Assembly (NCBI GenBank): GCA_904063045.1
Contig: CAJFCJ010000008.1
Location: forward strand, 992,001 to 1,056,000
Origin: Dimorphilus gyrociliatus
Taxonomy: Eukaryota > Animalia > Annelida
Length of the DNA: 64,000 nt
Direction: 5' to 3'
In this document: positions 7,543 to 16,500 of the stretch, piece by piece
How the letters are laid out: the number at the start of each line of letters is the position of its first letter
Numbering within the stretch: the first letter of the stretch is position 1
Translations under genes and position numbers: made by a program
The notes under the pieces: generated by a model
Seen by the model: only the letters and a program-made list of their open reading frames with translations
Database searches by the model: none
What the model was told of the DNA's origin: nothing

Positions 7543-8712
7543 TTATTTCTCTTCAAAAATTAGATTCCAACCCATTTGACTCAATAATTTATAACTGAAC
7601 TTTGACTCTAATATTCTAACTAGTCTCTTCGCAGGAATTCTATTATGTATTATTTCACAGATGATGAAAGATGGTCGATATCCCAAGGTAAGAAATTTTA
7701 GTAATATTTTATCACTGGTTCCCTCTGTGTCTACTGAAAGGAGGGCAAATTTTTTGGGTATGTTGTGAGCTTTTACGAAATTTCCAACCGAAATTCCATT
7801 AACCACCACGACCTTTTCCCCTCCATGTCTTCTTATTCCAGTATTTATGCGAAAATTCTCCATTTGAACGCTATCTCTTCCCATAGCCATTTCAATATCA
7901 CCGTCAGTTTCTTCAGTCAAGGCGGCTGGCACATAAATTATTTTTTGACTTCCATCATTATAAGGATCAATTATATTTTCATGGTTAATCTTTGCAATAT
8001 TTAATTGAGAAGTTATTGGTTCAATTAAAGTTGCATTCCAGCCTAATTCTATGAAATTAAAAGAATTGCTTGACAATATGCCATCATTGGCCCCAACGTC
8101 TATAACAAGCTTATTAAAATCTCGCTTTTCCATCATGTTTTTTTGAAGTATTCCTGTTCATTGACAATATAATTCTTATTATTAAAAATACCATGGAAGA
8201 ACAGTTTAGCACGAAAAAACACTTTAGAATTTATTAATTACTTTAACTATTTTAAACATTTGCTCTCTTGAAACAAATTTGTACTTTAGGGTCTTGTTAG
8301 TGTTGTCTAAGATTAATATGACAGTATTTATTGTTTACAAAAAAAGAAATTCACTTTGAAGGTAACTGTAAATTTTTTGCTTACTTTTGTAAATAAATAA
8401 CATCTCGCCATTCTGTGACACGTCAACGTTAAAAGTTGATAATCCATTCCTTCCGATAGAGAATAATCTACCAACGGTTTCGGATTTTATGCGAACTAGA
8501 CCTCTATGTTTTAGCGATGATAGCAGCCTGGACACGGTGTGAGTCTCCGATAAAGCTTCAAGCAAGCTTTTACCTGGAGGTGGAGATAGTTGATGTATAA
8601 CTGAAGATATTTTCCAATAAGATGTGAGGCCAATAAAAGATATTATAGCTAAATTTAAAGCAAAAGTAGTCAATACAATGACTGATAGCTTAGATGCTCG
8701 AAATCGTGCCAT
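7543..8712 (-). CDS. Type II membrane protein with FkbM/Methyltransf_21 SAM-dependent methyltransferase domain (Star-like architecture)
   Basis: Exon 8712-8385 has an N-terminal hydrophobic anchor (VIVLTTFALNLAIISFIGL) and splices in phase 1 (GTAAGC...AACAG) to exon 8153-7543 carrying VIDVGANDG...SNS...GW...LIEP and LLSVDTEG, typical FkbM motifs. The exact donor is uncertain. Confidence 0.72.
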
Positions 8713-9047
8713 GGTACTATATTATCGCTCATTCATGGTGACCAATTACCGAAAATATAAATTGTTTCCTTGTTAAAAAGTGAAGTCCATCAAGTATTTG
8801 CGAACTAAATATTGTATTGATGGAACCTATATAAACTGTATTTTTAAAAAATCGGGACAAAACAAGTTATTGCTATATGAAATTCTCAGAATGCGCAAAT
8901 CAGAAGCAAAGGAAGAGTATAACTGAAATATCTAAGATGCAAATAAGAGTTGCACACGCGGATAATTAATTACAAACTTATTTAAAATGTTTTTTTTTTT
9001 TTCAAAAAGATTTTTTAAAACTATTTTTGAAAAAAAGCAGGGTTTAT

Positions 9048-12000
9048 TCACTCGGCAGCCTCCTCAGCTTGAGGTTCGGCGTGATTCTCTTCCTCTCCTT
9101 CTTTTTCAACGTATTGCGGAAGGCCAGCGTCATCCCAAACAACTGCCCGTTTAGGATTTATGCGTGGGGCGGGATATCCATAAACTGGCCCTGCAAATAC
9201 GACTTTTCGCGACACATAGTTTCGCTTATCCTTTTGTCTTTCGTATTTGCTGTACATTTCAATTTTGGCGGGACATCCTGCGAAAAGCTCCTGCATTTTA
9301 TCCGCTTCGTCAGATACTTGTACTTTCTTGCCCTTTCCACCCTTTGTCATTTGACGTGCTTTTTCGGCCAATTCCATCATCTGTTAAAGTTCAAATTATT
9401 TATTTAGAAATGAATATATGAATCAAAAACTAAATATACAAACGTCGTATTGTTGGCGTTTGAATCTGACTTCCAGATCATATTTTTCACTTTCTAGACG
9501 ATAGATCAAATTGTGCAATTCCTTAGCTTTTTCAGATAATTTAGAAGAATCAAAACCAGAAATTTCCAGTTTTTGAATTCTTTGGGCTAATGTATTTCTC
9601 TTCTCATTTTCAATTTGTTCCTTTGTCTTTTGTCCAGTTATAGCACCGTCCGTCTGTAGTTTTTATTAAGAATTTAGTATTTTTATTCTAATTACATGTA
9701 TAATAAGTCTCGTTAGCGTAGGCTAGCTGATCCGGAAAACTCAAATTATGCACAATTATTTCTCATGTATTTACTCTTTACTATATCAATTTATTAAATG
9801 AATTGGAAAAATTAGTAGCTATATTTTTCTTTCATTGAAAAAATTGACATAATATTCTAGAAGAGTTATAGTATCATTACCAAAAATGAACATATTTTTA
9901 TTGGTATTCCATAATAGGCCTATTTTTTTGTTCATTCTTTTTATTATTTTAGCTATTCTGGTTTTCTAGATTTCTTTTTTTTTTAGATAATAGACCTTGA
10001 CAGCTAGACTGCTCTAACTAGTGCTAATAGAATACGTGCAAGAAAAAACCCAATACTAAAAACTAGCCAGTAATCAACGTGCTCGAAGCTAGCAAATTAG
10101 AGAAACATAACGGAAAATAAAAATTAAATAAACAAATTCTCTTAAAATCAATTAATCGATCGCTTATTTAAATAGATAACCAATCGATTCGCGAAACAAG
10201 TCGTAGTTTAGTAGCAAAAGATTACTTTAGTGGTAGATATAATTTTTTTTTGCTTGAAAAGGAAAACAAATTATGGATAGAAACTTTTTCGAAGCTTCAC
10301 CGTTTGTTTTTTTCCCCCATCCGATTATTAATAGGTTAATGTAAAAAAAAAAAGACCTCTTTATCAGCTACCTCCGAAGATCCTCCTCCTTCGCCTGCTT
10401 TCTTTGTGATAACGAAATTTGGTTTAGGTGGGTTCTTCCATTTTTGCATCTCAGCCATTTTCTTTTCGCGGGCCTCCCTACGTTCAGCTTCCAAGCTATC
10501 CTTCTGTCTTCTCCTCTCCTCTTCCTCAGCTTTTCGTCTAGCTTCTTCCTCAGCTCTTCTCTCAGCCATTCTCCTTTCTTCCTCTTCACGTTCCTTCTTT
10601 CGTTGTTCCTATATGTTTGCAGGAAAAAGATTAGATGAGACTAGTTTTATTCTTATTTCATTTTTTATAATTATTATATGTTCAATATTTTGTATTTAAA
10701 TTTCTTATCCTACGTTTCTCTTCCGTAATTCTTGTATTTCTTCTTCCATTTGTTCTCTTTCTCTCTTATTATCTTCTAACATTGCCTCTGCATCTTCGTC
10801 CAATCCAACAGTTTGAATTTGTCTGCGTTTCTGCCGAAAAAAAAGAGAAATTACTTACCCTTCTCCTACGAAGGATTTCAATTTCCTCCTCCTCTTTCTC
10901 TCTTTCTAAACGGCTCTGCTCCAAAACTTCCCTGGTAAATTCATCCAAACCTTGACCTTCAAATTCTGATCGCCATTGTTGGCGCCGACGCTGAGATATT
11001 ATTTTTATTACTTTTAATGTTTATTTACTCTAATAATAAAGTGTGTTTTTTCAAACTTATTCATTATATTTAATAAAAAGAAGGGAACTTTCAATTTTTT
11101 CAATGATTTCCTTTTTTTTTTTAAAGAAAAAAAAGATCATTGAAAATAAAATTTATAAAACGAAAAAAAAAGAAAATATCAAGAGAAAAATGTCTAGTTT
11201 TCGTATCGTATTCTTTTTATAAAAAGAATCTTTTATCAAAATCTTTTTGTAACTTTGGTCAAACAAAATCATTATTGATATAATAGAATAATATTAGCTT
11301 AAGTATATCTTTAGTTAATGATTATTCTTGAATTTTACACAAAAAGTAGTGTAAATAGAATCATCTATCAGTGTAGAATAGAATATTCCATATATGGTAA
11401 AGAGAAAAGAACAGCTATATTCTTTTTTTAAGAACGCTACGTCGAAATTTCAATATGGCAACATTCTCGCTAATTGAAACCCGAAATATTACTTATGCTA
11501 CAATATAAACGAAAATAGTTTTCTAGGCAACAAATAGGTTCAAATTCTGACAGTAAATTGCAAGAAGAAGAATATATGTAAATATATATATTGCTTACGG
11601 ATTGAAATGAAAAAGGTTACTTTTTCTCTTCCTTAACGCCATCTATAGGCGAAAACAAGTTAAAAAACGTTTGCCGGTCTAATTTTACCTTGAGGGAAGC
11701 TGGAAGGTAATGTTGTGTGGGTTAGGTATTTAATGATTAAAGTGTAAAAAAAGATAAACTTTAATCATTAAAAAGACATAACTGTTTCTAGCCATTGAAT
11801 TATTGAAGCAAAGCCGTTTAGGAGAGTTGTTTTAATGATTAAAACTAAAGTTTTAATCATTTACTAAACTTTGAGAGAAAAGTTATAGATCAAAAACTCT
11901 TTGCGAAGAATCTGCATACCTGCATAGCCAATTCCGCCTCGGATGGTCCGCTGTCCTCTACTGGAGCCGATCTAATTTACATGAATTTATAAGTAATGAA

Positions 12001-12488
12001 AATACTATTTTTGATGTTAGGTTGTCTCTAAAAGAGGTACATACTTTCTAGTTGGACTGCTAGGTGCGCTTTCTTCCCTATTCACCAAACAAAACAATTA
12101 GATGGGGTAAGATAAGATACAAAGTAGAAATAGCTAGGTTGTGAGAGATAAATAGAAATGAAAAAATAAATATCACATAATTTTCAATATTGATAAAATT
12201 ATGTAATATCTGGATCACACAACTGAATTTATACTAATGAAACTAGGTTTATAAAGCTACGAAATTGAAATGAGAAAAGATGGAACGTCAATATCAACTT
12301 ACTCTTCTTCACTCCTGTTACAATATCAATAATTAAAAAGTTATTAAACAATGCATGAAATGTCATATTTAAACAAGCGTATTCTTTAATGATCATTTTG
12401 TATGAAGAGTATATCTTAATATGTTAAATGATGGGGATATATATACGTACATTTCTTCTTCACTTACAACTTCTTCTTCGTCAGACAT
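9048..12488 (-). CDS. TnT: Troponin T, lophotrochozoan type, with microexon and candidate mutually exclusive exons
   Basis: GCCGCC-ATG at 12488: MSDEEEVVSEEE|M-SEE|E-SAPVEDSGPSEAELAMQ|(exon A or B)|EQRKKEREEEERR...PKPNFVITKK|...LESEKYDLEVRFKRQQYD|MMELAEKARQM...KIEMYSKYERQKDKR; splice phases are consistent. Confidence 0.95.
10714..10990 (-). other. Tandem homologous troponin T exons A (10859-10990) and B (10714-10830) separated by a 28-nt spacer
   Basis: Both exons are phase 0/0 with canonical AG/GT ends; the peptides share GLDE...ERE..EEEI..LR.R. Confidence 0.88.
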
Positions 12489-13388
12489 GGCGGCTACTTT
12501 TTACTGTTAAAAAAAGGAGAGATTGTATTTCTCTACGAATTTTTCATTAAGTATTCAAGTTAACAATTAAGTAATATGCAGAAATCTTTTAAATATACTT
12601 AACTTATCTTACTTTTAATAAGTTTTAATAAAATATCTAGAGAAAAACTTACTTAAAAAAGAATAAAATGCAGAGAAAAGACGGAAAGAAGCGTTCGAAA
12701 GCTTGCGTACTGCGAAACTGCACAGATATTTCAACCGCTAAGCAGAAGCGCCCTTCTAAAAATAGAAAACTGCAAGTAAATATGCAGCTTTTGCTCCAAC
12801 CTTTCGCTGGTAGCCTATATATTTTTCGCTGTACTTGCGTTTCCCTCTCTATCTCTCTAGCTTTCTAAACCCTCCCCCCTCTCTTTATACGTTTTTCTTA
12901 TGCCTTATGAAAAAATTCCAAAGGTTTTTTTTTCGTTGCATTGGCCATTCTATAAATTTTTACGATTTATACATAGTTCTTTTTTCTTTCTACACCGCCC
13001 CCATTACACAATCTAAGTTTGTTCCCCTAGTTTTATTTTAATCCAATCTCTTATCTATTTATAACAATGAAAATTCAATACAATATAATATTGGTTATTT
13101 TAGCATTAAATAAATATATTCAAATATTTTTAAACGCCAATCGCATTCTTCTTTAATGATGTAGGGAAGTAATTAAGATAGGCCTATGAGTTTGAAGGAA
13201 TCCAGTTTCTTTATATTTTAAGAATTCATTTCACACTATTTATCCTTGAAATATCTTTTAACATTATTGTTTTTATTGTAAGAAAACGAGTTATTTTTCA
13301 TTTAAAATAAAAATTATATATATATGCAGCAAATACAGAGCATATACACTTTTGCAGTATATAAAAATACTGTATACTGTACAACGTA

Positions 13389-13390
<2 letters not shown>

Positions 13391-13433
<43 letters not shown>
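13391..13433. repeat. (TA)21 microsatellite
   Basis: Perfect TA dinucleotide run, downstream of the Pol lambda stop. Confidence 0.95.
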
Positions 13434-13436
<3 letters not shown>

Positions 13437-13509
13437 GGTAGATGTTATGCTACTTCGAATAATTATTTGTTGATATTTATTAATAATTTTAAAACAAAAT
13501 ATTCAGCAA

Positions 13510-16500
13510 TCAGTGGTCTCGTTCGTTCGGTGGTAGATATTTTAAACCCAGATGCTTAAACACTGATTCTTCGGTCGGAGTAGGCAAAGGTACGCCTGGA
13601 TTTAATTTTTCTCCTCTCTGTAGGTAAAAACTATTTGTAGTTTTTTCTATTTTTTTTTCTTATTGGCCTATAGGTAATTATATGTACCTTTCGAACAACA
13701 CCCTTATTTAGTGAATGTTCGGACAGAGACATACCCATTTTGCCCGCTAGATGCCTCATAGAACGATTGAAATGTGCAGAACCCGTAAAATACATTATGG
13801 CGCATGCGTATTCATCTCTGGGCACGGTTATTATATCAATTCGTCTGTGTTTTGCCCCCTCCTCATCTAGCTTGCAAACACCTAAGTACTTGCTCTGCCC
13901 TCCTTTCTGCTGCAGAGAAACAAGATGGTCTGTTAAAAAGCTACCTAGCCTCTTTATAATCTTTGGTAGGAGATCATGGTGAGACTTTCCGTCGGGATGA
14001 GTTATTAAAAAATCTACATCACCACATGTCTCTTTACCTCTTCTGTACGATCCACAGCAGAGTATCACTAAATCTGCATCAATTCCTAGACATTTCTCCC
14101 TGACAAAGTCATCAATTCTACCAGCTTCTTCTCGAGGCATTCTTTCTAGGAGATCGTCGTAATGTTTAAGGCCTATCTGTTGCGGTCTGGTCAATTTGGC
14201 TTTATTTCGAACATCTTCAAGAGTTTTAATGCCCTGAGATACCCACTGTCTAGCCGTTGTCTGCCCTACACCCCAGATTCCTGATAAAGTTGAAATTGCC
14301 TTTATATCTTCTTGATTTGAAAGTTCCTCAAGCTTCCTTAAACCGCCTGTCTCAACTATTTCCCATATCTTATTCGCTACCCGTTCACCAACCCCAGGTA
14401 TAGCAAGTGCTTCTTCAAAAGAGGTTATTGGTCTTGGATAGCGTTTGACGGCCGCAGCCGCCTTCCTATAAGAGAATGTGCGCCATCTATCACCAGTTGA
14501 TTCGTAGGTTGTAGCAAGAGCCTGAAATTAAATATGTAAACAAAGGAATCAAGGAGTTCATTCATTCATATTTTCCTTTAGCGTAAGAGAATAAAAGCAA
14601 AATTCATTTGATAAAAGATATTTTCAACAAAACCAAAAAAAATTCAGAACAAATATTCATTGCTAAATGTTTTTTCATTTGCTACTGAACTTTTGTCATA
14701 TGTGGTGAATATATATATATTAGTATATATGCACAGTAGAGATTATTTTTCTAGGCAATTACATATTTAAGATACATTTGTCAAGACTTTCGGTCAATTT
14801 TTTGATAGTGAGACATATGTAAAAGTATAATTAACTACGAAATAAAAATGTCTAAAGAATGTAAAACCAACAAAATAGTGTCTAGAAAAACAGTCCCTTA
14901 TTTATATACTGTATATACATTTTGTATATGCACACTTTGTGTAAAATGTTGAAATACTGTATCTTTTTCACAATTATTCTTCAGTTGAACATAGTCTAGC
15001 GTCCCTAAGTTGTAAAATTCCACCACAAATTTGGACTATACCACACAGGAGAAAGGCTAAAGAAGGATTCGCTGTTTTTTCATATATACTACCAAAAGCT
15101 GTTATTGACACCAACGTTGCTAATCCGTGGACCGTTAATATTATTGCCAAACCGTTTGCTATAAATTCTGGTTTTTTTACAATTTCTACAGCTACAGAGA
15201 GTGTAAGTGGTATATAAGTCGCTGTAATTGAAAGGAAAATATAAAATTCTCTTTGTGTTTGACTTTTAAATGACGAAAGGTTAAAACAAACCTGATATCA
15301 TGCCAAATAAACAAGCATAAATAATTAATAGATTATAAGTTCTCATATAAAAAGATGCTGATGTTAAAATTCCTCCTAGAATTGAAAAAATACCGAAAAC
15401 AAAATTCTTGTCAAACCAAGCTTTATCTCCTAAATAGCCTACAAGCGGGCGCACAGTCGTTGAACATGCGCCCATAATTGCAACTAGAACTGCAGCATTC
15501 ATTTTAGAAATACCATTGCTTTCAGCTTTAATTGGTAGCATCATAAACGGTACAACATGCCCATACAATAGGGTAAAATTTGAAAAGCAATAAATAATGA
15601 ATCTTTTATTTTTTAGGATTTCTTTATTGAAACGAGAAGACCTTTTCTTTTCAAGAAGGGATTTTGACAATAGGGGACCCGGTTTAAGTATGGCAGCTAT
15701 CAAGCAACCATGAAGTTGTAGACCACCAATTATCAAAACAGCTCCCCGCCAAGAATACTTATTGATTAGAAGTCTTGTAATAGGTCCCCAAAGCATAGAA
15801 CCTACGCTTATTCCAGTCATAATAACACTCAAGGAAAAGGCTTTTTTCTTCTGGAACCAATGAGAAACTGCAACTGGGGCTCCTAGTTGGTAACAGCTAT
15901 AACCAACCCCAGACACAATACCCATGCTAAAATAATAAACAATTACATTTCTGACGAGAAACGTTGTCAGGCAACATAAAGCTAGTATTAAACTACCACT
16001 AAAAACAACAACCCTGCATCCAAATCTGTGCACAATTGGACCCAGCAGCACTCCACTGAGACCTAAAAATGAAGATAACAAAGCTCCTATAAATGCTATG
16101 TTACTAGCTCTTTGTTCAGTAGAATCTATTATATCAACCATCATTATTCCAAACGAGGTTAAAGAACAACCTGTTAGCACCTCTAAAAAAAATGCTGAGA
16201 CCAATATCACCCAGGCATATCCGGAATCTGTTGAATCCTCTGACAAATTTATACATTTTGTATTTTTTTTAGAACCATGCTCTCCGTGCTCTTCGTCATC
16301 GCAATAAACACATTTAGTATCCGTTGATACCTGTTTAGTCTCTAATTCTAGATTTTTTATACAATCATTATTTTCTTCTGTCATTGAGTCTTTTGACATC
16401 CTTTGTAGTAAAATTAAGAGCTAATAAATTGCGTACAGATGTATTCATGGAACATTAAAATCCAGTTAATGTTGACGTGAAAAAAAATAGTCAATAGTGT

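Follow-up and report, generated by a model that had tools for sequence, protein, structure and literature searches.

A homologous pair of probably mutually exclusive exons, separated by a 28-nt spacer, in the troponin T gene of the annelid Dimorphilus gyrociliatus

Two homologous exons separated by a sub-minimal spacer

Troponin T (TnT) couples the calcium switch to tropomyosin. Here we describe the TnT gene of Dimorphilus gyrociliatus, located on the minus strand of a 64-kb window of a contig of this annelid (all coordinates are positions within the window). The gene carries two adjacent, homologous exons, exon A (10859-10990) and exon B (10714-10830), separated by a spacer of only 28 nucleotides (nt; 10831-10858). 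We consider it likely that A and B form a mutually exclusive pair and that the short spacer sterically blocks their joint inclusion in one mRNA; the block itself, the usage of exon A in D. gyrociliatus and any tissue or muscle-type specificity of the isoforms are what we infer from the evidence presented below. The identity of the gene, as claimed by an earlier reading made from the letters alone (hereafter the sequence-only reading), was borne out. Exon D (9444-9653) matched the Pfam Troponin domain PF00992 (E 4.5e-11), and the spliced A isoform of 348 aa was 100% identical to the NCBI protein DgyrCDS7028 (P0211) of D. gyrociliatus. Comparison with PDB entries gave higher scores against cardiac and fast TnT chains than against troponin I (TnI) chains. 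The gene is thus the troponin T gene of this species.

On re-reading, the coordinates and translations given earlier for exon A (132 nt, 44 codons, the upstream alternative) and exon B (117 nt, 39 codons, the downstream alternative) were found to be correct. Both are preceded by CAG; exon A is followed by a consensus donor, GTAAGT, and exon B by a weak one, GTAGGA. The two peptides share 17 of 37 residues (BLASTP E 3e-7, composition-adjusted), and their local score of 80 was not reached in any of 20,000 shuffles, whereas comparison of A or B with the equally charged exon C gave local scores of only 38-42. The likeness therefore exceeds what composition gives, and A and B are true paralogues, as had been proposed. 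No third copy of the exon was found within 8500-13500. Both exons are multiples of three in length and of phase 0 at either end, so that transcripts with A only, B only, both or neither would all be in frame, and each fits between identical flanks, namely the upstream constitutive exon 3 (11920-11971, ending ...SEAELAMQ, with its donor at 11919) and the downstream constitutive exon C (10372-10608, EQRKKER..., its used donor being GAG followed by GTAGCT at 10372/10371). Consequently, neither the reading frame nor nonsense-mediated decay can police double inclusion. Retention of the spacer, which is not a multiple of three, would shift the frame, as had been predicted, and a stop then arises at residue 118.

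The spacer was compared with other introns of the window. A blind scan for GTRAG..YAG intervals joining open reading frames (ORFs) showed a peak at 50-64 nt and a lower edge at 45 nt; candidates below 45 nt, the 28-nt spacer among them, were few and all at background level. The intron floor of ~45-50 nt obtained in this way is a sequence-based rather than a read-based estimate. Two intervals of 52 nt (70-121 and 1483-1534), cited by the sequence-only reading as the shortest introns it had checked, were indeed GT..AG bounded, and the median intron of the D. gyrociliatus genome is 66 bp (PMC7854359). At 28 nt, the spacer thus lies well below the floor. It consists mostly of the U-rich tract of exon B, and hence the branch point of B must overlap the donor of A or lie within exon A. 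With the 6-nt donor and the U-tract taken up, the 28 nt cannot accommodate a branch site of its own; the sole branch-site candidate in the spacer, GUAAU at +5 to +9, lies ~20 nt from the AG and overlaps the A donor.

We also observed that the U-tract at the B acceptor is unusually strong, unlike the stretch upstream of A. The latter, comprising the 54 nt before the A acceptor (10991-11044, minus strand), is A-rich rather than U-rich and ~90% conserved in the sibling species described below. It may hold a regulatory site for exon A.

According to the mechanism we propose, each mature mRNA would carry one of the two exons, with B as the default and A as a minor or restricted form. Since the A donor and the B acceptor are 28 nt apart, the interval would be too short for spliceosome assembly, and double inclusion would be blocked. 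A complex on the A donor and a complex on the B branch site and acceptor would exclude each other. Use of the strong B acceptor would excise A together with the preceding intron, whereas definition of A would let its donor outcompete that of B for exon C. The "hard-wired switch" of the sequence-only reading would in this way account for the non-inclusion of both exons, but not for the choice of one.

RNA evidence was available as assembled contigs from four runs, and such contigs drop minor isoforms. Contigs of run X1 (at least 99% identical) and of run X2 (a slightly diverged strain) both showed the joints 11920 to 10830 and 10714 to 10608, whereas the X5 contig stops at 11920 and continues with 8 loose letters, 7 of which match the start of B. 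The exon 3-B-C form, the only one present in the RNA contigs of three studies, is therefore real and looks like the major form. No assembled contig carried both exons or neither, although rare forms are dropped from such contigs. The junction mapping suggested by the sequence-only reading, when run on these contigs, thus recovered the expected exon 3-B-C chain and no A-B joint, while the expected exon 3-A-C chain was not seen. The public gene model DgyrCDS7028, in contrast, uses A and skips B, and the B form is absent from the protein set. The deposited D. gyrociliatus model therefore represents what seems to be the minor isoform, A, and lacks the RNA-supported B. In the pipeline behind this annotation, transcript assemblies had a weight of 10, ten times that of ab initio models (PMC7854359).

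Conservation of the pair and the segment it encodes

A search for the pair in other annelid TnT genes, also suggested by the sequence-only reading, was rewarding: a sibling species and one further contig hold A followed by B, and two other species show either-or transcripts. The sibling species is represented by the Logan genomic contigs L007, L008 and L009, found via cluster members of a related transcript. Its locus is ~80% identical in DNA, and L007 shows the same neighbour order, with DNA polymerase lambda upstream and an FkbM-type methyltransferase downstream. Exons A and B are both intact there, with the same splice sites. Exon A differs between the two species by 16 nt changes, with a ratio of non-synonymous to synonymous substitution rates (dN/dS) of 0.094 at a synonymous divergence (dS) of 0.57 (Fisher p 2e-5); exon B likewise differs by 16 nt changes (dN/dS 0.090, dS 0.73, Fisher p 2e-5). 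As judged from these substitutions, the protein-level constraint on exon A is exactly as strong as that on the RNA-seen exon B, which indicates that exon A is a live coding exon. The sibling spacer measures 29 nt and keeps the GTAAGT donor and the AG acceptor, but about one third of its positions have changed; thus its length is conserved and its sequence is not.

An orthologous gene is present on L002, a 40.7-kb contig of a distant annelid-like genome, where an exon ending ..SEAQLAMQ is followed by A' (8150-8275), a 63-nt intron, B' (8339-8464) and the EERKKER exon. A' carries the A signature LEQ..LE.E.E.EEI and B' the B signature MLE.NK.ER..ME.EI.ELRKR. The intron between them is by far the shortest in the gene, the adjacent introns being of 1776 and 1367 nt. 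It contains CTAAC 18-22 nt after the donor, and TTGAT at a normal distance from the acceptor is also present.

Among ~120 full-length relatives, B-type segments predominate. A-type segments occur in transcripts P0229 and P0245, which share the signature LEQ.RLERE..EEEI with L002. Apart from the segment, the A-type P0245 and the B-type P0226 are 99% identical. The corresponding mRNA contigs, L004 and L005, agree at 99.4% upstream and at 96% downstream of a divergent block that is bounded by the AELAMK and EQRKKER exon borders. Similarly, P0153 and P0002 are 100% identical downstream and differ in the segment. These comparisons show, for two other species, a single gene whose transcripts contain the exon of the A position or that of the B position. 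No protein with both an A and a B segment was present among the ~120 full-length relatives, which are cluster representatives and as such drop rare forms. P0002 and P0153, which come from one species, also differ after ..ARSMNKVG., reading G--LKRVQLAEDE and ADSLKRVQMT-DE, respectively; the difference could reflect another small splice alternative or allelic variation.

In a tree of the 42-column exon segment, the A exons of D. gyrociliatus, L007, L002 and P0229 fell outside a clade (support 92/78) of all B-type exons, while the A-position exons of P0245 and P0153 fell inside the B-like clade; an alignment of 42 columns is too short to separate old orthology with conversion from repeated duplication. 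Taken together, the comparisons support an old exon pair, both copies of which are under purifying selection.

To ascertain what the swapped segment encodes, a profile of 17 invertebrate TnTs was used, since PDB searches with the N-terminal halves alone failed owing to composition bias. The profile search succeeded: in thin-filament structures (6KN7 and related), the A/B segment matched cardiac TnT, with positions 42-83 of profile A2 aligning with the cardiac TnT stretch KRMEKDL...KDRIERRRAER. Full-length chains place the segment at about residues 90-127 of human cardiac TnT. The charged T1 helix upstream of the core is aligned to the region of tropomyosin-binding site 1, and the aligned cardiac TnT region has been reviewed as this site (PMC5062619). 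The alignment supports the view that A and B encode the first ~40 residues of the conserved T1 helix in two versions, and homology thereby lends weight to the earlier suggestion of two versions of a tropomyosin-binding helix. Exon 8 of vertebrates, in our reading, would be the equivalent of the annelid exon. The swapped segment corresponds to human cardiac TnT around residues 92-124, a stretch that holds known cardiomyopathy mutation sites and is not known to be varied by splicing in vertebrates. Two natural helix versions from one gene would make a simple comparative system, in which A and B could show how the contact at the TnT-tropomyosin overlap tunes thin-filament behaviour.

Several observations weigh against a sterically enforced choice between A and B. 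No contig in the four RNA runs covers exon A, and contigs cannot exclude a rare A-B junction. Word searches with exon A alone and with the exon-A region of DgyrCDS7028 returned only the annotated protein, a result of little weight given the limits of word matching and length filters. Scans of JGI contigs with a 26-mer of the exon 3-A junction and a 23-mer of exon A gave 0 matches; JGI contains the dinophilid B-type transcript P0279, so that these scans are a weak negative. D. gyrociliatus splicing is described as adapted to short introns, with no minimum stated (PMC7854359). Lastly, the L002 spacer, at 63 nt, could in principle be spliced. A short spacer is therefore not enough to account for exclusion throughout annelids, and sheer shortness is neither the ancestral nor a universal mechanism.

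The lack of exon A in RNA could mean that A is unused in vivo, a relic duplicate chosen mistakenly by the gene predictor, so that the gene makes the B isoform only. The RNA contigs and the searches described above would fit such a relic. However, as contigs drop minor isoforms, the missing exon A is not evidence of its absence, and the strong purifying selection at a dS of 0.57, the unbroken frame and retained splice sites of the sibling copy and the A-type exons of L002, P0229 and P0245 all speak for a functional exon. Decay would be expected of an unused exon of this age (46% identical to B), whose chance of staying open we estimate at ~4%, and the weight that the annotation pipeline gave to transcripts may also speak against a mere predictor error. 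We therefore regard the relic explanation as improbable. It is even less probable that the 28 nt are a genuine ultra-short intron and that A and B are included together as tandem cassette exons. Double inclusion would be in frame, and short introns are removed efficiently in D. gyrociliatus (PMC7854359), but the window holds no credible intron below 45 nt, too little of the 28 nt remains beyond the donor and the U-tract to hold a branch site of its own, and the two exons occurred together in 0 contigs and in 0 of the ~120 relatives' proteins. Sterically enforced exclusion remains the probable reading in that the 28/29-nt spacing is far below the intron floor, matches the C. elegans cases discussed below and goes with either-or transcripts in relatives; the 63-nt spacer of L002 does not share the constraint.

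A conserved intronic module complementary to exon A

Most of the 929-nt intron that precedes A cannot be aligned between the two dinophilid species, a few blocks being the exception. The largest of them, a module at 11716-11866 (minus strand) lying ~50-200 nt downstream of the exon 3 donor, is conserved in this otherwise diverged intron. It folds as two hairpins, at 11834-11861 and 11729-11772 (fold z -4.76), the stems of which are identical in the sibling species, except that one G-C becomes G-U, while the loops differ. Between the hairpins lies a single-stranded element (11792-11821), whose core, 11821-11803, was found as inverted repeat I1 to be complementary to 10924-10906 within exon A (codons of ..LEQSRLE..), with 19 consecutive pairs possible, 2 of them G-U. 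The best local duplex had an energy of -36.8 kcal/mol in D. gyrociliatus, compared to -21.9 +/- 1.8 for 31 codon-order shuffles (z -8.5), and the same positions in the sibling species gave -31.8 kcal/mol compared to -21.0 +/- 2.4 for 24 shuffles (z -4.5); the energies are windowed and, with 24-31 shuffles, the z-scores are rough. Folding of the whole intron-exon duplex gave meaningless giant loops, and a longest-helix statistic was swamped by purine/pyrimidine runs. Three substitutions fall within the duplex between the two species: A-U to G-U and G-U to A-U, both of which preserve the pairing, and a third that opens a terminal pair. No partner for the module was found in exon B, where the best duplex (-19.7 kcal/mol) was within the shuffle range, and no intron-exon duplex above shuffles was found in L002. 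The module had no match in Rfam. A further isolated intronic block of 30 nt, at 11351-11380 (minus strand), is conserved in the sibling species (93% over 28 nt).

The module may steer the choice between A and B through a role in splicing, a possibility that we consider less likely than not. It contains four TAAT(G/C)ATTA palindromes, from which the hairpins are built, and given these it could instead be a DNA-level enhancer of the homeodomain type. Tentatively, we can envisage a dinophilid RNA device in which two clamp hairpins present a strand of 19-30 nt that pairs with the coding sequence of exon A, coupled to the 28-nt steric lock. Pairing would either hide A or draw its acceptor to the exon 3 donor, and the overlap of the A donor with the branch and acceptor signals of B would turn this single decision into a strict either-or. 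Such a device, if real, would amount to docking/selector control with a single, exon-embedded selector, joined to a steric lock.

RNA structure, together with trans-acting factors, might on the other hand be what mainly sets both exclusion and choice, the 28-nt spacer being a by-product of tandem duplication and genome compaction. Retention of the pair in L002 with a 63-nt spacer and the either-or transcripts of other annelids would agree with this, as would the 19-bp pairing of the module with exon A in both dinophilids and the conservation of its stems amid varying loops. Yet the 28/29-nt spacing has been kept across a dS of ~0.6 while about one third of the spacer positions changed, and it is shorter than every credible intron in the window. 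Moreover, no equivalent of the pairing element exists for exon B or in L002, and pairing thus cannot by itself forbid double inclusion. We consider this explanation unlikely, though less so than the relic or the ultra-short intron, and retain the steric block as the probable basis of exclusion.

The remaining exons were assigned from the RNA contigs, which set the chain as a 5' untranslated exon, a start-codon exon, a microexon, a cassette exon, exon 3 (11971-11920), B, C, D and the last exon. All lie on the minus strand. The 5' untranslated exon ends at 12653, and the start-codon exon (MSDEEEVVSEEE..) spans 12451-12503. The 12-nt microexon (GAGTGAAGAAGA; 12303-12314) was present in every contig spanning the site, whereas the 33-nt in-frame cassette exon of the acidic N-terminal region (12045-12077) was spliced into the X2 and X5 contigs and left out in X1. 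The acidic N-terminus is thus assembled from microexon and cassette, giving the classic variable N-terminus of TnT, here in an annelid. Exon D, the core of the Troponin domain, was likewise supported by the RNA contigs, and the last coding exon, with the stop codon, spans 9048-9380. The neighbours of the gene are a DNA polymerase lambda/beta-family gene (13634-14194) and an FkbM-type methyltransferase ORF (7546-8136), both on the minus strand. Six troponin T isoforms (P0268 and P0271-P0275) are labelled in EukProt as Ancora sagittata, a gregarine parasite, but almost certainly come from an animal host, presumably an annelid such as Capitella. Their C-termini occur in two homologous, alternative versions (..AKIEMYSRYERQKDKRTFSV.. 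and ..AKVEMYSIYERQKDKRTFGD..), a sign that the TnT gene of that annelid may have another swappable exon, at its C-terminal end.

Comparison with known systems

In C. elegans, where the minimum intron is ~40 nt, the intron between the alternative exons is too short for excision in five mutually exclusive clusters, namely let-2 exons 9/10 (30 nt), egl-15 5B/5A (14 nt), bet-2, gly-5 and gly-6; all have exons that are multiples of three, and their short introns were never observed to be excised (PMC4165533). The TnT pair resembles these clusters in its homologous tandem exons of 3n length and in an intron below the species minimum, by which double inclusion would be physically barred. It differs in gene and phylum, in that exclusivity was established there by reverse transcription PCR and is a prediction here, and in having a conserved intronic element complementary to one exon. 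Donor-to-branch-point distances below 50 bp have been surveyed in human (PMC5740500). In vertebrate alpha-tropomyosin exons 2/3, another thin-filament gene, the donor of the first exon interferes, as proposed here, with the branch site or acceptor of the second; there, however, the intron is long enough and the branch point misplaced, whereas here the whole intron is 28 nt. The putative branch site CTAAC of L002, 18-22 nt after the donor, would resemble the alpha-tropomyosin case.

Swapping of one of two homologous exons within a TnT gene is known from vertebrate TNNT3 exons 16/17 (PMC8559874) and Drosophila upheld exons 10A/10B (PMC13322953), both of which are mutually exclusive and yield muscle- or stage-specific isoforms. 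Those pairs lie in the C-terminal T2 region, which meets TnI and troponin C, in contrast to the A/B pair at the start of the T1 helix. The A/B position is that of the 39-residue exon 8 of TNNT1, which is constitutive in vertebrates. As in docking-site/selector systems (Dscam exon 6, 14-3-3zeta; PMC6071210), a conserved intronic element downstream of a constitutive exon can pair with an alternative exon. Unlike in those systems, it has a single partner, exon A, which lies inside the coding exon and not in the preceding intron, and there is no competing selector for B, so that the arrangement of one selector per exon is not seen.

In the searchable literature we found no report of a swapped T1-region exon pair or of annelid TnT splicing. 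Steric exclusion by a too-short intron and C-terminal exon swaps in TnT are thus known, the T1-region pair appears to be new, and the exon-embedded pairing site is possibly a new twist. The TnT locus of D. gyrociliatus offers a compact, testable example of probable steric exclusion across 28 nt with a candidate RNA-pairing selector.

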